Sequence record: KT919972.1
Strand: one strand, 5' to 3'
DNA length: 64,000 nucleotides
The notes beneath the pieces were generated by a model. That model was given only the letters and a program-made list of their open reading frames with translations, did no database searches and had not been told where the DNA came from. Positions 1 through 50,503 of the stretch are shown here, piece by piece; the stretch's first letter is position 1; each line of letters starts with the position of its first letter. The translations under genes and the position numbers were made by a program.

Positions 1-274
1 GGTCATCGAACGATTCTGGAAATTCCGTGATGTTCGTACTCGTATTGAAGCATTGATGTTACAACGTGACATGTGTAAAGTGCCAATTCGTCGTGACGCA
101 ATGCCAGGTTTCATTCACCACAACGGCGTACACGACTGTGCGAAAGATGCAATGATGCTTATCATGGCAGCGCGTTACGCACTTGATTTAGAAGAACTAC
201 CCGAGAAAATGGAATGTCATGAAGTATCGGTTGATTTCACTGACGAAGAGAAAGAGGAACTTGGGCTACTATGA
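1..274 (+). CDS. dexA: DexA-like 3'-5' exonuclease, C-terminal part (runs off the window start)
   Basis: Frame 2 is open from base 2: FWKFRDVRTRIEALMLQRDM...HNGVHDCAKDAMML...RYALDLEE, matching the T4 DexA C-terminus (RDIRTRIEALLL...HDSIHDCAKD). Confidence 0.85.
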   Translation, partial: VIERFWKFRDVRTRIEALMLQRDMCKVPIRRDAMPGFIHHNGVHDCAKDAMMLIMAARYALDLEELPEKMECHEVSVDFTDEEKEELGLL

Positions 275-432
275 TGATTGCTGTACATTTACTATCACAA
301 GCCAAGCCAGTTGTTCATGATAATGTAAAGAACGCTTACACTAAAGACGGTCTTTACTGCTTGATGATGAAAGACGGTATGGTTTACAAATACCCACTGA
401 TTAATATTTTCAGAATTACAGAAAATATGTAA
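271..432 (+). CDS. Small hypothetical protein, 53 aa (below ORF-track cutoff)
   Basis: ATG overlaps the dexA stop; MMIAVHLLSQAKPVVHDNVKNAYTKDGLYCLMMKDGMVYKYPLINIFRITENM*. Confidence 0.6.
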   Translation: MMIAVHLLSQAKPVVHDNVKNAYTKDGLYCLMMKDGMVYKYPLINIFRITENM

Positions 433-440
433 AAAAGTGG

Positions 441-469
441 TTGCGTTGTCGATGTGACTTGTGTAATAT
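441..469 (+). promoter_or_regulatory. Sigma70-like early promoter (class I) overlapped by a 14-bp inverted repeat
   Basis: TTGCGT-N17-TAATAT; cgttgtcgatgtga (444-457) / tcacatcgacaacg (472-485). Confidence 0.75.
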
Positions 470-501
470 ACTCACATCGACAACGAAAAGAGAACAATAT
501 T

Positions 502-639
502 ATGACAACGAATCGCTTAGATTGGACAATCGAAAAGAAAGCTCAGTTCATCGCGACATACAAAGACGGTACTGTTTTAGTTGCTCGTACTCGCGAAGAG
601 CTTAATTCGCAAATCAATGAGTTTGAAAAAACGTTATGA
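502..639 (+). CDS. Hypothetical protein (MTTNRLDW...)
   Basis: ATG after the AAGAGAACAATATT leader; first gene after an early promoter. Confidence 0.65.
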   Translation: MTTNRLDWTIEKKAQFIATYKDGTVLVARTREELNSQINEFEKTL

Positions 640-1034
640 ATTTGCATTCGTTCATGTACAAATGGAAAAGATTTTCATTTGAATTCAACAATTACGCGAT
701 TGAGAAGCAGCGTGGCTTAGTCGGGACTGTTGACTTTGTGATGAAGAAACACTTCACACATCGAGTATATGACCGATTCTGTGCTGCTGAACATTCAACA
801 TTGCGTAGAATGCTGTATCATACAGTAAACAAGCACTTAGGTGAAGTTCTGTATTGGTATTACAGTGCTGAAAAGCGTGAGCTTGCTATCAAGCGTGAAG
901 ATATTTACATAATATTTGAGAAGGGAATTAAAGGTTGTATTTTGATTACGACGATATATCGTAATCAAAATAAGCAAAACCATGATAAATTCTTTTTGAT
1001 TGATATAAGCAGAAAGCAAAATGAAGCAAATTAG
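636..1034 (+). CDS. regB: RegB-like sequence-specific endoribonuclease
   Basis: Colinear similarity to T4 RegB as recalled: KRFSFEFNN~RHFESEFRQ, KKHFTHRVYDR~SQHLLDRAIQR (His/Arg kept), MLYHTVNKHLGEV~ELFHKIKDHVLEV, ELAIKREDIYIIF~RLEITDGNLWLGF. Confidence 0.55.
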   Translation: MNLHSFMYKWKRFSFEFNNYAIEKQRGLVGTVDFVMKKHFTHRVYDRFCAAEHSTLRRMLYHTVNKHLGEVLYWYYSAEKRELAIKREDIYIIFEKGIKGCILITTIYRNQNKQNHDKFFLIDISRKQNEAN

Positions 1035-1266
1035 ACTTGGTGACTATATCGAGGTCACTGAAAGACTAGACCAAGAGAGCTTTTTTGGTCAGTTGGTTGA
1101 TATTGCACCGTGTCTATGGGCACGTGGTGATTTTCTACGACTTGTTGATGACGCAGGTAATGAAGTTCAATTGAACACTGTGAACATCGACATGATTAAT
1201 GGCACAGTTGTGAGTGAATTAACTAGAAACGCTCATGGCTTTATGTATTGTGAGGAAAAGATTTGA
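1021..1266 (+). CDS. Hypothetical protein
   Basis: ORF in an overlapping operon. Confidence 0.65.
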   Translation: MKQIRLGDYIEVTERLDQESFFGQLVDIAPCLWARGDFLRLVDDAGNEVQLNTVNIDMINGTVVSELTRNAHGFMYCEEKI

Positions 1267-1706
1267 AAGGTTACGTATTTGTAAATCGCTATTGTAAAGG
1301 TATTCAAGCTGGTATTCAAGGTGCACATGCGCTTCTACGTCTTGCGCGTAAAGCAGATAACCCAGTTTTCAATAAGTGGCTGAATGATCACGAGACGATT
1401 TGTGTTCTGTCAGCGGCTAGTCATGACCATCTTGAAGAAATCGAAGAGACAATTCGTGAAATGGGTGTTGTTGAAGACATTACATTTTTTCAAGAAGAAG
1501 GTTTACATCACTCACTAACAGGTGTAGCATTCATTGGCGACGACACGCTAATGCAAGTTCAAGCCGAAATGAAAGAATGGCGTGAACTGCGTAAGATCGG
1601 CGAAGGTCTAAAGCGTCGCGACTTTGATTCAGATATGTTCTACAAATACGGTCGAACATATGAACTTGCAAAATACTTAGAGGGGTTTCATTCTCATCAT
1701 GGATAA
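1263..1706 (+). CDS. Peptidyl-tRNA hydrolase type 2 (PTH2/PTRHD1)-like protein
   Basis: GIQAGIQGAHA, W...HETICVLSA..HDHLEEI and FQEEGLHHSLTGVAFIG mirror PTH2 motifs (GKxAAQxAHA, W....KIVL...EEL, DAG....TALGIGP). Confidence 0.5.
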   Translation: MKGYVFVNRYCKGIQAGIQGAHALLRLARKADNPVFNKWLNDHETICVLSAASHDHLEEIEETIREMGVVEDITFFQEEGLHHSLTGVAFIGDDTLMQVQAEMKEWRELRKIGEGLKRRDFDSDMFYKYGRTYELAKYLEGFHSHHG

Positions 1707-1929
1707 CTTAAATCTTAAATTGACTACTGCGACTCGCTTTGAAGAGCTAATGACAAAACCAGGTGTTGATGTTAAAAATAGCTCTTCTGGTCCTGAATTC
1801 ATTACGACTGTTTACGAGAATGGTGAATTACTTGCAGAGCGCGTATTGTACGTTTCACAAGCAGAGCACTTTGAAGTGAAACTACCTGAAACGGCAAAGC
1901 AAGCACGCAAAACGAGCAAACTGCCGTAA
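1699..1929 (+). CDS. Hypothetical protein
   Basis: ORF overlapping the upstream stop. Confidence 0.65.
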   Translation: MDNLNLKLTTATRFEELMTKPGVDVKNSSSGPEFITTVYENGELLAERVLYVSQAEHFEVKLPETAKQARKTSKLP

Positions 1930-1934
1930 AAACT

Positions 1935-1964
1935 GTTTATTAACTAACTTTGTGAGTGTAATAT
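1935..1964 (+). promoter_or_regulatory. Class II (GTTTA-type) promoter, probably serving td
   Basis: G-TTTATT-N17-TAATAT. Confidence 0.5.
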
Positions 1965-1965
1965 T

Positions 1966-2169
1966 ATGAAATCTAAAGGTTTTACTCTGATCGAATTGAT
2001 TGTTTTGATTGCGATTCTAGGGATTCTAGCGTCGGTAGCTGCTGGTGCGTTTTTTGGCGCTGAACAACCTACATCTTACAGTACTCAACCGCAATCAGAG
2101 ACTTATGAAATTGACGGTCAGTTGATGCAATGTACTCCCGTGCAAGCAGTATGGGACGATGATTTTTAA
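1966..2169 (+). CDS. Type IV prepilin-like mini-protein (class III signal peptide)
   Basis: MKSKG|FTLIELIVLIAILGILASVA: G-1/F+1/E+5 motif plus a ~20-residue hydrophobic helix, then only ~40 polar residues. Confidence 0.8.
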   Translation: MKSKGFTLIELIVLIAILGILASVAAGAFFGAEQPTSYSTQPQSETYEIDGQLMQCTPVQAVWDDDF

Positions 2170-2175
2170 AGGTAA

Positions 2176-3078
2176 TTGATGAAAAACTACTTGGAACTTT
2201 GTAAAGATATTCTAGAAAATGGTGATTTTCTTGAGAATAGAACAGGCACGAATACTGTTAGTGTTGTTTCGCGTGAGCTTCGATGGGACTTAGAAAAAGG
2301 TTTCCCGTTGCTAACGACTAAGAAAATGGCGACAAGAGCTATTTTCGGTGAGTTGCTATGGTTCTTGAGCGGTTCAGGTTCGATTTCTGAACTGAGAAAA
2401 TACACTGAATTATCAGACGAAGATTTCTGTATCTGGCAACAAAATCTCGACGAGCTGAACGAGCGTGCGAAAGAAGCAGGTATTGTTCGCAATGAAGACG
2501 ACCTTGGTTATGTCTATGGCAAAGTGTGGCGTAAACGTCTATCTGTAAATGCAGAGCGAGAAATTGTTGAGTTTGACCAGATTCATCAATTGCTGTGCGA
2601 TATTGCAGCGGTTAATGAAGACCCGACGCAAAGTGCGCAACGTCGTATGCTTGTTGAAGCATGGGACCCGTACTTCCATACTGAAAGTAACTCAGTTGAC
2701 GTAGCTCTACCGCCATGTCATTACGGCTTTCAAGTGTTCGTGCGTAATGGTAAGATCAGCTTGAAATGGAATCAGCGTTCAGTTGACACATTCTTAGGTC
2801 TACCGTTCAATATCGCATCGTATGCTTTGCTAGTGCATATACTAGCTAAATTGACTGGCTTAGGTGTCGGTGAATTGATTTTCTCTGGTGGTGATGTTCA
2901 CATTTATGAAGATCATCTAATACAAGTAATGAAGCAAATGAGACGTACGCCGCGTGCGCTACCTCAGATTGAACTTCCTGAATTTGAAACGTTGTCACAG
3001 TTGTTAACTAAACGCGCAAGTGATTTTCGCGTATATGACTATGACCCATACCCAACACTAAAAGGTAAAATGTCGTGA
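2176..3078 (+). CDS. td: Thymidylate synthase (no intron)
   Basis: RTGT, FPLLTTKK, ALPPCHY, WNQRSVD.FLGLPFNIASY and GDVHIY motifs. Confidence 0.97.
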   Translation: MMKNYLELCKDILENGDFLENRTGTNTVSVVSRELRWDLEKGFPLLTTKKMATRAIFGELLWFLSGSGSISELRKYTELSDEDFCIWQQNLDELNERAKEAGIVRNEDDLGYVYGKVWRKRLSVNAEREIVEFDQIHQLLCDIAAVNEDPTQSAQRRMLVEAWDPYFHTESNSVDVALPPCHYGFQVFVRNGKISLKWNQRSVDTFLGLPFNIASYALLVHILAKLTGLGVGELIFSGGDVHIYEDHLIQVMKQMRRTPRALPQIELPEFETLSQLLTKRASDFRVYDYDPYPTLKGKMS

Positions 3079-3269
3079 TTAGTAAAACAGATTATTTTGA
3101 ACTGAAAACAGGTACGCCGATCATTGTAATTGAGCGAATTGACACAATCGACGGTGAGCTTATCAAACTTCCGTACAGCAAAGTTGTTGCAGCTAACGAC
3201 CCGCTCATCGGCGATTCGCTAACTGACGGCAAGATTCACTATCTTTTTGACTTTGAAATTGGTGAGTAA
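3075..3269 (+). CDS. Hypothetical protein
   Basis: GTG start overlapping the td stop. Confidence 0.6.
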   Translation: MISKTDYFELKTGTPIIVIERIDTIDGELIKLPYSKVVAANDPLIGDSLTDGKIHYLFDFEIGE

Positions 3270-3270
3270 C

Positions 3271-3477
3271 ATGAACTTAGGTGAGTTCGTAACGGGGTTG
3301 TTGACATTGATTGCGTTCGGTATCGTCGCAATGTTGGTTATTCTCGGATTGTCAGTTGGCGGGCTTATCTTCGGTGCATGGCTCATCATTTCGGGTCATA
3401 CAGTCGCTGGGTGGGTTGTATTGTTCATCTCGGCGATTGTTTTCGCTTTAATAGGCACAATAATGAGGAATTTGTAA
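3271..3477 (+). CDS. Small membrane protein (2 TM)
   Basis: Two long hydrophobic segments; start MNLGEF. Confidence 0.65.
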   Translation: MNLGEFVTGLLTLIAFGIVAMLVILGLSVGGLIFGAWLIISGHTVAGWVVLFISAIVFALIGTIMRNL

Positions 3478-3767
3478 TGGCGTTACATATTTACGTAGAA
3501 GTTGACACCAATGATGGTGATTACGTTGGCGGTCTAATCGCAGCATCGAGTGAAGAAGTCGAGCGTTTTGAAACGCTTGTTCATCTTTCGGGTGATAGTC
3601 TAGCGAGTTGGACAGAAGGCGAATGCCAAGTTCGCCCGAATTCAGAAGTATACCCGCAGTTTAGCGAAAATGACATTGAGTTCATTTCCGATAAAATGCC
3701 TTACTGCGAATACGGCTTTCACACTGTTGAAAAAATTAAGATTGTTGATGTGTTGAATACTCTATGA
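3477..3767 (+). CDS. Hypothetical protein
   Basis: GAGG RBS, ATG at 3477 (MALHIYVEVDTNDGDY). Confidence 0.65.
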   Translation: MALHIYVEVDTNDGDYVGGLIAASSEEVERFETLVHLSGDSLASWTEGECQVRPNSEVYPQFSENDIEFISDKMPYCEYGFHTVEKIKIVDVLNTL

Positions 3768-4084
3768 TCAATGAAATTCTAGCTTCAAGTAAGCGAATCG
3801 ACAACGGTCGAACTGTTAAAGACGTTCATATGAGCGTTGTTGAAGAAGTAGGCGAACTAGCAACTGAAGTTCGCGTCAAGTACGGTACGTCGTACAAAAA
3901 CGCTGACGTTGACGGGATTCTAGGTGAATCGGTTGATGGTATTCTGTGTCTAATTGACCTAATTTACGTCGATAACCCGAACATCACTGAAGCTGAAATC
4001 ATGAACGTTGTTCGTAACAAGCTCGCTAAATGGGAGCGAAAGGAAAACGAACACAAAGCAAAAACTGAAAAAATGGTGAAATAA
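3764..4084 (+). CDS. MazG-like all-alpha NTP pyrophosphohydrolase
   Basis: EEVGELATE...GESVDGILCLIDL matches the MazG EExxE/ExxD pattern. Confidence 0.75.
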   Translation: MINEILASSKRIDNGRTVKDVHMSVVEEVGELATEVRVKYGTSYKNADVDGILGESVDGILCLIDLIYVDNPNITEAEIMNVVRNKLAKWERKENEHKAKTEKMVK

Positions 4085-4381
4085 ATGACAAATCGTTATA
4101 CATTTGAAGAAATTCTTGGTGAAGACTACGACGACAAAGACTATCTTGACTTTCTACTAGATGGTTATGGTGACTTCCCTGGTGTGAAGTTCATCGACCA
4201 AGACGGCGGTGGTGAAGGTGGTTCTGAGTACTGCTACACGATTCTTGAAAAAGACGGTCGTTACTTCAAGACTGAATACAGCTACTACAGCTACCACGGT
4301 TACGACAACTACGGGGATCACTTCGTTGAAGTTTACCCAAAGCAAGTTACAATCACCCAATACGTGAGCACTCCTCAGTAA
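4085..4381 (+). CDS. Acidic, Tyr-rich hypothetical protein
   Basis: ORF in operon; DQDGGGEGGSEY. Confidence 0.7.
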   Translation: MTNRYTFEEILGEDYDDKDYLDFLLDGYGDFPGVKFIDQDGGGEGGSEYCYTILEKDGRYFKTEYSYYSYHGYDNYGDHFVEVYPKQVTITQYVSTPQ

Positions 4382-5142
4382 TGCGTATTGTTGTCGGGTC
4401 AACTGCGTTACATCATAATGGTATTCGACTGCGTAAGACCATTAAAGATCTAGATGTATTCGTAGACTCGCCCGACTCGGCTAACGACGGGGATGATTTT
4501 ATTGTCATGCCCGTCGATATATTGCAGATGTTCGACGGTGATATAGCAACTGCTGACGAAATCTACACGATAAAATGCAGTCATCTTGGTTGGGATGAGC
4601 ATAAAGTCGGGTACAGTCAGTTTGGTGGTTCGACATTGTGGGACAAGCACAAGCGTGATGTTATGGCGCTATCGCGATTCTGCAAAATCAAGCCTGAGCT
4701 ATACGCAGCGTTGACAAATCATTGGCGAAAAGAGCTTGGCAATAAAGATTATCTGTGTTTGAACAAAGACGCAGACGACTTCTTTAATGACAAAGTTCGA
4801 TACGTGTATGAACATGATGAGCTTCATCGAATGGTCGCAGCACCTAACCGCCCGTTGTATGAGAAAATTCTCAAAGACGGCTGTGATGTTTTAGTCAGTA
4901 AAGAGAAGTTCGAACAGTTGTCATTTGAAGACAAGATCAATTTGTTCCACGAAGAAATTTCGGTAATCGCAATTGAACGATACATTGTTCACGGAATGAT
5001 GCCGTTGAATGCGTGGAATCATGCGTTGAAGAAGACAATTACACGGCTTACTAAGAATTGGGCATGTGATTTCATTTGTGCAAACATGAGTCATTACATG
5101 AAGCCGAAATATAATTTGAATATTCTTGAAGAAAAGGGTTGA
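4381..5142 (+). CDS. Pol-beta-superfamily nucleotidyltransferase-like protein
   Basis: N-terminal hGS...KDLDV motif (VGSTAL...KDLDVFVD). Confidence 0.6.
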   Translation: MRIVVGSTALHHNGIRLRKTIKDLDVFVDSPDSANDGDDFIVMPVDILQMFDGDIATADEIYTIKCSHLGWDEHKVGYSQFGGSTLWDKHKRDVMALSRFCKIKPELYAALTNHWRKELGNKDYLCLNKDADDFFNDKVRYVYEHDELHRMVAAPNRPLYEKILKDGCDVLVSKEKFEQLSFEDKINLFHEEISVIAIERYIVHGMMPLNAWNHALKKTITRLTKNWACDFICANMSHYMKPKYNLNILEEKG

Positions 5143-5168
5143 CTGCGGTCAGCCCTTTTGTGTATTAT
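5132..5168 (+). promoter_or_regulatory. Intrinsic terminator hairpin fused to an early promoter
   Basis: aaaagggttgac-tgcg-gtcagccctttt contains -35 TTGACT (5139); -10 TATTAT at 5163. Confidence 0.75.
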
Positions 5169-5212
5169 AGCTACATCAACACGATGTTGACCTAAAAAAA
5201 AGAGAGAACATT

Positions 5213-5542
5213 ATGACTGACCAAACTAAATTCGACATCAAATTTGCTGAAATCAAAGTCGTTTATTCTATGCGTGCAGAACACCAAAAAGTAGCAATGC
5301 GCCTTGAAGATGGTACAATCATGCTGCATGAAGTGCTTTTCATGGATTCGAAAGGTTCATATTGTGAAAGTCGCAAACTGTGGAGCACTACAGTTGAAAA
5401 AAAATGTGCATGGCCAGGTTATGAGTCAGCACAGCTTATTGACAAAATCAAAGCAGCGGGTAAAGTTTCACTTAAACATTGGCGTGCTGCTTCAGAAGCA
5501 GACTACGAAAACTTTCGTCTTATCGAATCATTTGAGGGTTAA
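5213..5542 (+). CDS. Hypothetical early protein
   Basis: AAGAGAGAACATTATG leader. Confidence 0.75.
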   Translation: MTDQTKFDIKFAEIKVVYSMRAEHQKVAMRLEDGTIMLHEVLFMDSKGSYCESRKLWSTTVEKKCAWPGYESAQLIDKIKAAGKVSLKHWRAASEADYENFRLIESFEG

Positions 5543-5544
5543 TC

Positions 5545-5946
5545 ATGTCAGAATTTTATCAAATGTGGGAAAAGAAAATCGGGCGTCTTGAAGAGATGCA
5601 CAAGAAAATCTACGACATGGGTCAACTTGCTGCTGGTGATGAAGGCAAGTATATTTTCAAAACTGAAATGAAGCGTGAGCATCTATCACGCGAGATTTCA
5701 CATGAAATTGACCATAAAGGTCTAGATCTACATCATCTTATGTACAAAGGTTTGCATGAGACAGCACGTGAATATCAAGGTGCAATCATGATATTCTGCA
5801 AAGAAATGCCACTCGAACAGCGTCGAGAACTTTTTGACAAGATTCGCGCAGTGTTCAATATTGATGCTTACACAGACGAAGCATGGGAAGGCGTTCTTAA
5901 ACGTTTCAAAGGTTCACTAGTAAGCCAAGGTATGATTGAGGAATAA
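5545..5946 (+). CDS. Hypothetical protein
   Basis: ORF with GAGG RBS. Confidence 0.7.
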   Translation: MSEFYQMWEKKIGRLEEMHKKIYDMGQLAAGDEGKYIFKTEMKREHLSREISHEIDHKGLDLHHLMYKGLHETAREYQGAIMIFCKEMPLEQRRELFDKIRAVFNIDAYTDEAWEGVLKRFKGSLVSQGMIEE

Positions 5947-5949
5947 ATT

Positions 5950-6018
5950 ATGAGCAGCTACAACACAAAGAAAGCAGAGTGTGAAAAACGCGCAATGATG
6001 AAATCAATTGGAGCATAA
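5950..6018 (+). CDS. Possible 22-aa peptide
   Basis: GAGG RBS; MSSYNTKKAECEKRAMMKSIGA* exactly fills the gap between two genes. Confidence 0.4.
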   Translation: MSSYNTKKAECEKRAMMKSIGA

Positions 6019-6280: not shown

Positions 6281-6645
6281 GTTGTAATTTAATGGAACGT
6301 CTCGCTGATGAATATCGAAAATCAGACGTGTATGACCCTGATTTGCACTGTGATATTTTTGCTATCCCTGTTCAAGAAGACGGCGAAATGGATTCGATAT
6401 ACATCAAAGAAGCATTGTATGGTGTATATAATGAGATTCGGCGCTATACTGGCATGTCGCTAGACGAAGCCAAGGAATGGTTTAAAGTTCAAGAAGTTGA
6501 AACGTGGTTTGGTGAATCAAACACTGTAAACGAAAAAGTTTATAACACGTTTTTCGTGCGTTATGATATTCCTGACGAGTTAGTTAAGCAACAATACTCT
6601 GAGTGGAAACAAGGTCCCTCGGCAACAATTAAGGAATCATTTTGA
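6277..6645 (+). CDS. Hypothetical protein
   Basis: GAGG RBS; ATG overlaps the upstream stop. Confidence 0.7.
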   Translation: MSCNLMERLADEYRKSDVYDPDLHCDIFAIPVQEDGEMDSIYIKEALYGVYNEIRRYTGMSLDEAKEWFKVQEVETWFGESNTVNEKVYNTFFVRYDIPDELVKQQYSEWKQGPSATIKESF

Positions 6646-7403
6646 GAATTTTCATTTTTAGCGGTGCTGGTCTTGATGCAGAATCAGGTATCAGTACGTT
6701 TCGAGACGCAAATGGTCTGTGGGAAAATCATGACATCATGGAAGTGTGTAACATCAACACATTTCCAAACAATTATGAAGTGACACATCGTTTCTACAAT
6801 GAGCGTCGTAAACAATTAGCTGAAGTTCACCCGAATTCAGCACACTACAAAATTGCTGAACTGTGTGAAAAATACGACGTTGACAACTACACTGCGAACG
6901 TATCAGATTTACTTGAGCGTGCAGGTTGTAAAGACGTTAAGCATATTCACGGTGAGTTGACAAAGATCGTGCAAGATTACACGTCAAAAGACAGTACAGT
7001 TATTGACATCGGGTACAATGAATACGAGTTGCGTACAGGTCGTCGTGATAAACCGGGTGTTGTGTTCTTCAATGAAGGCGCACCATTATACACTCATTTC
7101 TGGGGTGATATTGACACTCTATTGCCGACTGACATTGCAATTGTTGTTGGTTCGACGCTTGAGATTAACCCGATTCATTGGGATTTGTCTGCGACGGGCT
7201 GTAAATTCATTCTTATTAACCCGACTGGCATTGACACTGAAAAGCATTCTGCACTAAACGAAGCGATTCGTATGTGTGACGTATTCATCAATAAGCCAGC
7301 CACTGAGGCATTCGATGAAATTGATACGCACATTGAAGAACATATTTCACGCAATTTTCCTAATGGTCTACTTGACTATCGAGGGAATAGCGTTAATCGT
7401 TAG
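6642..7403 (+). CDS. sir2: Sir2/CobB-family NAD-dependent deacylase
   Basis: GAGLDAESGISTFRDANGLW, HIHGEL, KPGVVFF, IVVGST, INP motifs. Confidence 0.92.
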   Translation: MRIFIFSGAGLDAESGISTFRDANGLWENHDIMEVCNINTFPNNYEVTHRFYNERRKQLAEVHPNSAHYKIAELCEKYDVDNYTANVSDLLERAGCKDVKHIHGELTKIVQDYTSKDSTVIDIGYNEYELRTGRRDKPGVVFFNEGAPLYTHFWGDIDTLLPTDIAIVVGSTLEINPIHWDLSATGCKFILINPTGIDTEKHSALNEAIRMCDVFINKPATEAFDEIDTHIEEHISRNFPNGLLDYRGNSVNR

Positions 7404-7545
7404 TGGAAGTGGGGCTGTTATGTCATTCATAGCAGCTTTTTTACTCATTCTAGATAAGTTGTATATTTTAGCAGGTTGTGCGTCTATACTAGGTGCATTG
7501 TTAACGTACTGCTATGTGAAATTGAGTGAGGAACATGATGTCTAA
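7363..7545 (+). CDS. Small membrane protein (start uncertain)
   Basis: Hydrophobic ORF between sir2 and gene 39. Confidence 0.45.
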   Translation: MVYLTIEGIALIVSGSGAVMSFIAAFLLILDKLYILAGCASILGALLTYCYVKLSEEHDV

Positions 7546-50229: not shown

Positions 50230-50503
50230 CATTGCTCATCATTCTTTTGATGTGTACATTGGTCGCGGCACCCCGTTTGGGAACCCATTTAAATCAGGGA
50301 TTGACGGTACTCGAAGCGAAGTTATTGAGCTTTATCGCGAGTGGTTACGCATTCAATTACAAGACGACGAATTTAAAAAGCAGTTTATGCAACTAAAAGG
50401 AAAGATTCTCGGCTGTCATTGTAAGCCTAAAGCGTGTCATGGTGATGTAATATTAGAAGAACTTGATAGATTGAGCAGCCCATTAAACAATTTTATAGGT
50501 TAA
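50219..50503 (+). CDS. DUF4326-like protein
   Basis: DVYIGRG..FGNPF, LKGK.LGC.C.P..CHGDV. Confidence 0.85.
   Translation: MIVNIAHHSFDVYIGRGTPFGNPFKSGIDGTRSEVIELYREWLRIQLQDDEFKKQFMQLKGKILGCHCKPKACHGDVILEELDRLSSPLNNFIG

Follow-up and report, generated by a model that had tools for sequence, protein, structure and literature searches.

Phage phi-Grn1 (KT919972.1) is a virulent T4-like phage of Vibrio alginolyticus. It is KVP40-like and is placed in Schizotequatrovirus valkk3 of the Straboviridae. Near the start of the 64,000-nucleotide stretch of this record that was analysed here (the window), there is a small gene that begins like a type IV pilin and ends without a pilin head. Its entry in the record, phiGrn1_0145, reads 'hypothetical protein'. 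An original prediction took it for a truncated, phage-encoded mimic of a type IV pilin. The question is what a virulent phage does with the front end of a pilin, and what the residues behind that front end are for.

That the protein looks like a pilin has been noticed before. Its orthologue in phage KVP40, KVP40.0030, carries the record note 'identified by match to PFAM protein family HMM PF00114', which we take to be the Pilin family of Pfam. The record of the QD01 orthologue says 'Tfp pilus assembly protein PilE', the one in phage 6E35.1a is named 'type IV pilus biogenesis protein', and the UniRef cluster of the KVP40 protein is named as a prepilin-type N-terminal cleavage/methylation protein. 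In phage ValKK3, ORF231 was reported with a weak PilE match in a virulence database (PMC13142089); this ORF is likely the counterpart of phiGrn1_0145. Since the pilin-like flag already stands in public records, and truncated PilA-like phage proteins have been discussed (PMC12952977), the idea is less new than the original prediction implied. The pilin-like call for phiGrn1_0145 is not new. New here are the tail module and its conservation, the data on selection, a synteny kept strictly over several lineages, and a probable N4-like member. In the literature searched, which did not include the KVP40 genome paper (PMC180978), neither expression nor proteomic nor functional results turned up for KVP40.0030 or for its relatives.

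The gene itself is easily delimited. On the plus strand, an ATG at 1966 opens a frame of 67 codons that closes with a TAA at 2167-2169, exactly the span that had been predicted, and this is the sole ORF of at least 30 amino acids there when both strands are considered. The translation begins with MKSKG, followed by FTLIE, and is hydrophobic without a break up to about residue 30. The leader thus has five residues, two of them Lys, with Gly5 at position -1, Phe6 at +1 and Glu10 at +5. Hydropathy analysis gives a single transmembrane (TM) segment.

The signal is also recognised by established models. Pfam PF07963 (N_methyl) scores 30.3 bits, where the gathering score is 21.2 (E 2.7e-7), and NCBIfam TIGR02532 scores 26.6 with a cut-off of 16.3. 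Both lie above their cut-offs, which bears out the claim of a complete class III signal with its assembly helix. Scanning the whole 64 kb in six frames for the class III core returned phiGrn1_0145 and one match at 50298 that lacks a hydrophobic helix. Since the core is otherwise nearly absent from the window, the signal is no chance match. The parts of the locus are listed in Table 1.

Table 1. Parts of the phiGrn1_0145 locus, in coordinates of the window.
Feature	Coordinates	Strand	Basis
Spacer of 36 nt and translation-initiation region	1930..1965	+	Alignment, RNA fold
Mini-pilin ORF, 67 codons and stop, phrog_13280	1966..2169	+	PF07963; phrog_13280 E 3.6e-46 over the full length
Class III leader, residues 1-5, basic, ends in Gly-1	1966..1980	+	Sequence; M1, K4, G5 invariant in 9/9
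Mature N-terminus and alpha1-N-type helix, residues 6-30 (Phe+1, Glu+5, Gly+14)	1981..2055	+	F6, T7, L8, E10, G19 invariant in 9/9
Polar linker rich in Ser/Thr/Gln/Pro, residues 31-44, variable	2056..2097	+	Alignments; pLDDT 51-59
C-terminal beta-hairpin module, residues 45-58, invariant G51, C56, T57	2098..2139	+	AF2, alignments
Acidic C-terminal end, residues 59-67, present in only some lineages	2140..2166	+	Alignment

AlphaFold2 (AF2) models the protein as a helix from residue 8 to 29 or 30, a disordered linker, and one beta-hairpin with strands at 45-49 and 52-56. The mean pLDDT is about 67, a moderate confidence, and the outcome was the same when the model was run with 4 and then with 9 aligned sequences. 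Confidence is best in the helix (pLDDT 86-89 for residues 11-20). There is no globular pilin domain in this model. True pilins have an amphipathic alpha1-C, a beta-sheet head and a disulfide-bonded D-region, and going by the model and the single Cys, C56, these are absent here. About 37 residues lie beyond the helix, so a tail of some 40 residues with one Cys and no pilin head, as first described, is what the model returns: a hairpin only. Compared with the PDB by Foldseek, the model, which is too small and too low in confidence for this to be telling, had no match at E <= 0.001. A Pfam scan of the tail alone gave no meaningful match.

The charges are unevenly divided. The tail holds seven Asp and Glu residues and zero Lys or Arg, for a pI of about 4.1; across the family the tails have 3-8 acidic residues and a pI of about 4.1-4.8, and most members have no Lys or Arg there. 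Basic residues ahead of the helix, combined with an acidic tail that has none, fit an N-in/C-out topology. Family members have one Cys each, with the exception of P0044, which has two. The one conserved Cys would lie in the oxidising periplasm, which suggests that its thiol has a function, for example in a homodimer or a mixed disulfide.

The word 'truncated' invites the thought that the gene is a remnant, and here the relatives are informative. In PHROGs, phiGrn1_0145 falls in phrog_13280, a family with function unknown, which matches it over positions 1-67 of 67. The same family profile matches the proteins P0041 (3e-12) and P0044 (8.6e-11), the latter over nearly its whole length. Lengths within phrog_13280 run from 58 to 73 aa. 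With the phiGrn1_0145 protein as query, tblastn finds 46 records, from Vibrio phages only, and the 2-kb neighbourhood of the gene is found in 29 phage records, every one of them from Vibrio phages. A profile search of 1.84 billion representative proteins yields 18,459 matches at E <= 0.001. In the best 150 of these 18,459, the C-terminal module is present in P0002, P0008, P0009, P0014, P0041 and P0044, which measure 61-73 aa.

An alignment of 9 family members, 44-96% identical, has eleven invariant columns: M1, K4, G5, F6, T7, L8, E10, G19, G51, C56 and T57 (phiGrn1_0145 numbering). The 8 from M1 to G19 are determinants of processing and assembly in type IVa pilins and pseudopilins, and the remaining 3 are in the tail. 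The hairpin is conserved in phages of V. alginolyticus, V. parahaemolyticus, V. harveyi, V. natriegens, V. splendidus and V. crassostreae.

Position is conserved as well. KVP40, QD01, nt-1 (Mylasvirus), 6E35.1a and F86 all have a small ORF with this signal directly upstream of the thymidylate synthase gene (td). It encodes 61-67 aa at 52-77% identity to phiGrn1_0145. Metagenomic T4-like contigs with P0041 and P0014 have the same synteny upstream of td. In total, at least 6 lineages of T4-like vibriophages keep the gene in this place.

Pairwise dN/dS for phiGrn1_0145 is 0.06-0.41 over 11 non-saturated pairs. The upstream ORF has 0.05-0.24 in the same genome pairs, and td has 0.035-0.11. phiGrn1_0145 changes more quickly than the genes beside it, yet both of its halves are clearly under purifying selection. 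Conserved length, conserved position and a hairpin under purifying selection make the tail a functional module, and on these comparisons phiGrn1_0145 is a real gene of a full-length, conserved, phage-only family.

The prediction that the protein is phage-encoded stands, given that it is a phi-Grn1 gene with relatives in Vibrio phages. The label 'truncated' does not: it is contradicted by the conserved length of 58-73 aa, the position, the C-terminal hairpin and the purifying selection. The same data dispose of the idea that this is a decaying, functionless fragment of a captured host pilin gene. It is true that the globular domain is missing and that the N-terminal look-alikes are bacterial pilins. 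Against this, the ORF is intact and its length conserved in all related genomes examined (the 29 neighbourhood and 46 tblastn records), dN/dS stays far under 1, the family has a conserved C-terminal module of its own, and the GC fraction of 0.417 equals that of the phage (0.410 for the 64-kb stretch). The pseudogene reading is effectively ruled out by the conservation and dN/dS data, and we regard decay as barely credible.

If the gene is real, it has to be named. The protein has the signal domain of the type IV pilin superfamily and lacks the globular domain. Like MshA (9LAB), PilA (9LAA), PilE and GspG (5WDA), it has a class III signal, an alpha1-N helix, Phe+1, Glu+5 and Gly+14; unlike the type IVa pilins and pseudopilins, it is without alpha1-C, beta-sheet head and disulfide-bonded D-region. 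It falls far short of the NCBIfam equivalog cut-offs for GspG (26.7 vs 88.85) and GspH (28 vs 80), and in both cases the match covers the N-terminal 33-34 residues only.

Flp/Tad (type IVc) pilins are defined in part by a Flp-type processing motif. In phiGrn1_0145 the residue after Glu+5 is Leu, which departs from that motif, and no Flp-family Pfam entry matches the protein at E up to 1.

The best matches among solved structures are to Geobacter PilA-N ('geopilin domain 1'; 2M7G, 6VK9, 7TGG, 9EGP), a naturally short pilin of type IVa type, at E 4e-8 to 3e-6 and over the N-terminal 36-41 residues only. The helix of Geobacter PilA-N is long, and its partner PilA-C is the product of a gene of its own. 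Unlike that pair, phiGrn1_0145 is not flanked by a gene for a secreted partner: no split-pilin partner adjoins it, the neighbours being thymidylate synthase and an ORF of 76 aa that lacks a hydrophobic signal. The protein is therefore best termed a class III signal protein of phrog_13280, and not a pilin, pseudopilin, Flp pilin or split Geobacter-type pilin.

As to function, the best explanation is that phiGrn1_0145 interferes with the type IV filament machines of its host. We put the probability of this at roughly 0.45, judging from sequence and predicted structure. The class III signal would insert the protein N-in/C-out in the inner membrane. A host prepilin peptidase of the PilD/VcpD type would, we infer, cut after Gly5 and methylate Phe6, so that leader residues 1-5 are predicted to be removed. 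The mature protein of 62 residues would then join the membrane pool of host pilins and pseudopilins. It would bring along the residues for docking and assembly (Phe+1, Glu+5, Gly+14 and the hydrophobic helix) with no head to contribute, and in place of a pilin head it would display a short acidic periplasmic tail with its conserved one-Cys hairpin.

The targets could be MSHA or ChiRP-type pili, the type II secretion pseudopilus, or both. How such interference would work allows for several options. A defective subunit may be loaded; the peptidase or the platform may be kept occupied; or the hairpin may bind a conserved periplasmic part of the machine, possibly by a disulfide. The benefit would probably be the exclusion of pilus-dependent competitors, or the shutdown of pili or secretion in the infected cell. 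The enzyme is presumed to be the host's, since there is no polytopic peptidase-like ORF within the 64-kb window, which is about a quarter of the 249-kb genome.

Several observations speak for this explanation: signal scores above the curated thresholds, the charge pattern, purifying selection on both halves, the fixed place upstream of td, the early gene block with its open initiation region, the probable N4-like member, and precedents in Pseudomonas phages. The complete prepilin determinant is invariant, including an acidic residue within a membrane helix, which argues for recognition by the host prepilin pathway over a generic anchor. And the hairpin is near-invariant over the phages of at least six Vibrio species, where surface mimics of the P-FimU type are highly diverse. 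This points to a target that is itself conserved, perhaps the peptidase or a part of the machine, and not to a variable filament surface. The helix counts against it: at about 22 predicted residues it is, to our knowledge, shorter than that of any pilin known to polymerise.

We attempted to read the target system from the N-terminal helix and rejected this approach. Similarity is about equal to MshA, PilA, Geobacter PilA-N and GspG, and with scores this much alike the target system is unreadable from the sequence.

The receptor of KVP40 is OmpK and not a pilus, according to a review (PMC13609209). Blocking pili would therefore give such a phage no obvious self-exclusion, and any exclusion benefit would concern other phages that do depend on pili.

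The receptor also matters to the strongest competing account, which is that the class III signal serves for export and anchoring only. The protein would then be a bitopic inner-membrane protein, and its periplasmic hairpin would act on a target that has nothing to do with type IV filaments. Examples would be a component of superinfection immunity (T4 Imm-like or Sp-like), receptor maturation or envelope stress. It fits this account that the known receptor of the KVP40 phage group is an outer-membrane protein, and that other small membrane ORFs of unknown function are in the same gene block. After the signal, the hairpin with its invariant Cys is the most distinctive part of the protein, and no pilin counterpart or bacterial homologue of it was found among the matches listed. 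What a generic anchor does not need is an invariant Gly-1, Phe+1, Glu+5 and Gly+14 in relatives down to 44% identity. Ordinary signal and TM sequences drift, and in this family dN over the N-terminal 30 codons is as low as 0.09-0.12. We consider the account unlikely, if still a serious one.

A phage pilin that enters working pili is known. P-FimU is a prophage minor pilin of Pseudomonas aeruginosa phages, which is incorporated into pili and blocks phages (PMC12952977). It works through the host's pilus machinery and has an effect on other phages, and phiGrn1_0145 resembles it in being encoded by a phage and belonging to the type IV pilin superfamily. The Vibrio protein could likewise enter working pili and change their surface or tip, barring competing phages that bind there; every N-terminal residue relevant to assembly has been kept. 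The resemblance ends soon, however. P-FimU is a full-size, functional minor pilin of temperate phages, as diverse as would be expected from an arms race, and it replaces host FimU at the tip without loss of function. At 67 residues phiGrn1_0145 has no head and lacks that full-size fold, and phrog_13280 is conserved under purifying selection. The exposed hairpin is near-invariant over phages of six Vibrio species, and a virulent phage has a short window in which to act. All this makes a masking or replacement role improbable.

Closer in form to the interference we favour are proteins of about 60 residues from six virulent Pseudomonas phages, described as truncated PilA-like, for which both incorporation into the pilus and inhibition of assembly have been put forward (Sztanko et al. 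2026, PMC12952977). These share with the Vibrio family the virulent phage, the pilin N-terminal helix without a head, and a similar size. Going by their description they are set apart from it: the Pseudomonas-phage proteins correspond to the N-terminal 60 residues of PilA, whereas the Vibrio family has about 25 pilin-like residues and then a hairpin of its own.

Phages also disable type IV pili by other means. Aqs1, Zip, Tip and PfsE are non-pilin phage inhibitors that act on cytoplasmic or platform components. The proposed outcome for phiGrn1_0145 is the same as theirs, a disabled host pilus, but unlike it they are not pilin homologues. Aqs1 is reported to disable the host type IV pilus and to hold off competitors in this way, and Zip has served as a control inhibitor (PMC12952977).

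The surroundings of the gene say something about when it is used. In KVP40 the order is rnh, 59, 32, frd, uvsX, 41, nrdD/G, 61, dut, dexA, the phiGrn1_0145 orthologue and td, followed by 39, 30, 46/47, 45, 44/62, regA and 43, all co-directional. The T4 counterparts of these genes are pre-replicative. There is no T4-type late promoter motif within 13 kb of phiGrn1_0145. A sigma-70-like match at 1940-1967 was considered as its promoter and rejected, given that it runs into the start codon and is thus placed too far downstream to serve the ORF. With the sole nearby match of this kind unusable, read-through transcription from upstream is likely. phiGrn1_0145 is most likely a pre-replicative protein, on a timing that is inferred.

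This bears on a further proposal, that the protein regulates lysis or its timing by means of a weakly hydrophobic, releasable, SAR-like N-terminal helix, in a layout analogous to the T4 RI antiholin. It is small, and has a Gly/Ala/Ser-rich N-terminal helix followed by a periplasmic tail, as this proposal would have it. The neighbours are genes of replication and nucleotide metabolism and not of lysis, though, the late promoter motif is absent nearby, and the SAR model does not require the exact prepilin consensus that is conserved here. A role in lysis is thus very improbable.

The spacer in front of the gene is A/U-rich, and it is far better preserved than the coding DNA around it. phi-Grn1, KVP40, QD01 and nt-1 agree in every letter of its 3' half and of the codons that follow, to about 1980, in genomes only 77-85% identical. 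The conservation does not extend to the 6E35.1a and F86 lineages, which have a gap of 4-10 nt. RNA folding of the initiation region gives z = +1.81, with 197/200 shuffles folding at least as well, and comparing 1-6000 with Rfam brought up nothing but one chance match below threshold. A conserved, unstructured initiation region fits efficient or regulated initiation of translation, and the spacer may be a translational control site.

Several other genes in this region drew attention. Two genes upstream of phiGrn1_0145, at 1263-1706, is a 147-aa ORF that matches the PTH2 peptidyl-tRNA hydrolase family (26.1 bits vs 23) and is annotated 'hydrolase' in related phages. The same early block has a 76-aa ORF with 3 predicted TM segments (3247-3477) and an 89-aa ORF with 2 (7276-7545); the phage may send several small proteins into the inner membrane of its host. 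The KVP40 gene corresponding to 6642-7403, KVP40.0043, is annotated as a Sir2-type NAD-dependent deacetylase / ADP-ribosylase and lies just upstream of the gene for the topoisomerase II large subunit. On one metagenomic T4-like contig (L007, 6222-8099), thymidylate synthase is split by an inserted ORF with GIY-YIG/I-TevI-type domains, which recalls the td intron of T4 and the homing endonuclease it carries. In ValKK3 as well, a homing endonuclease is inserted in this neighbourhood.

Outside the T4-like vibriophages there is one probable family member. P0044 (73 aa) is encoded on a 5.7-kb metagenomic contig, among small co-directional ORFs and beside an RNA polymerase gene whose product shares 47% identity with the 'RNA polymerase 2' from an Alteromonas phage that is N4-like. 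When the tail of P0044 alone is aligned to the family tail profile with hhalign, the probability is 86% (E 4.9e-6, 13 columns). P0044 thus probably belongs to the family, and its contig is one of an N4-like marine phage.

In bacteria the resemblance mostly stays with the signal. Among the matches listed from a scan of 185,579 species-representative bacterial genomes, which is biased by its exact N-terminal seed pattern, most cover the N-terminal 21-56 residues. A few, at 30-44% identity and mainly from candidate-phyla genomes, span nearly the whole query and might carry the hairpin; apart from these, no bacterial homologue of the phrog_13280 tail was found among the matches listed. The nearest marine look-alikes are pilin genes of Thalassotalea and Colwellia, in an operon with an ATPase that has an MshE-type c-di-GMP domain, and solitary Photobacterium pilins. 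In the Thalassotalea and Colwellia loci (L098 139-7360, and L100), six consecutive pilin genes include the best bacterial N-terminal look-alikes. This array is downstream of the ATPase with the MshE-type c-di-GMP domain and a GspF/PilC-type platform gene, which makes it an MSHA-type operon.

Other viruses have small proteins of this design with different tails. From IMG/VR, seed patterns reach 151 viral stretches with class III signal proteins; 18/79 of the complete pilin-like ORFs are at most 80 aa long, with several unrelated tails. PHROGs has five other families with pilin-type N-termini, two of them short (59 and 72 positions) and one annotated 'pilin'. Judging by these families, headless pilin-like proteins are a recurrent phage invention, and phrog_13280 is one lineage of it.

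Two sets among the IMG/VR contigs can be described further. Four related jumbo-phage contigs of 224-258 kb (L013-L016) encode at 4001-4195 a separate class III signal protein of 64 aa, whose tail is different and has two Cys. Its neighbours are small ORFs with several TM segments and an ORF of 270 aa with a hydrophobic segment at its N-terminus. In three more (L019, L025, L047), ORFs from 4001 form a mini-pilin family of 76-82 aa with a common two-Cys tail unrelated to that of phrog_13280.

Taken at its broadest, interference would mean that virulent T4-like and N4-like marine phages have in common a phage-only kind of headless 'poison pilin', matured by the host, whose Cys-hairpin would fasten on a conserved part of the filament machines of Vibrio and so stop pili, type II secretion or both within minutes of infection. 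In this full form the idea is doubtful. If true, this would be the first characterised pilin mimic of a lytic phage that acts as an inhibitor and not as a replacement subunit.

As it is, the finding is a sound annotation with a plausible candidate mechanism. KVP40-like phages are widely proposed for biocontrol in aquaculture, and the role of a pilin-like gene is relevant to their annotation; the ValKK3 study raised this gene as a 'virulence-database hit' (PMC13142089). Type IV pili and type II secretion are central to adhesion, chitin colonisation, DNA uptake, secretion and phage adsorption in Vibrio. A small, conserved phage protein that enters this pathway as a prepilin would offer a natural tool, and a compact one, for studying the selection and loading of pilins. 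With it, pilin mimicry by phages would reach beyond the temperate ones of Pseudomonas to virulent ones from the sea.
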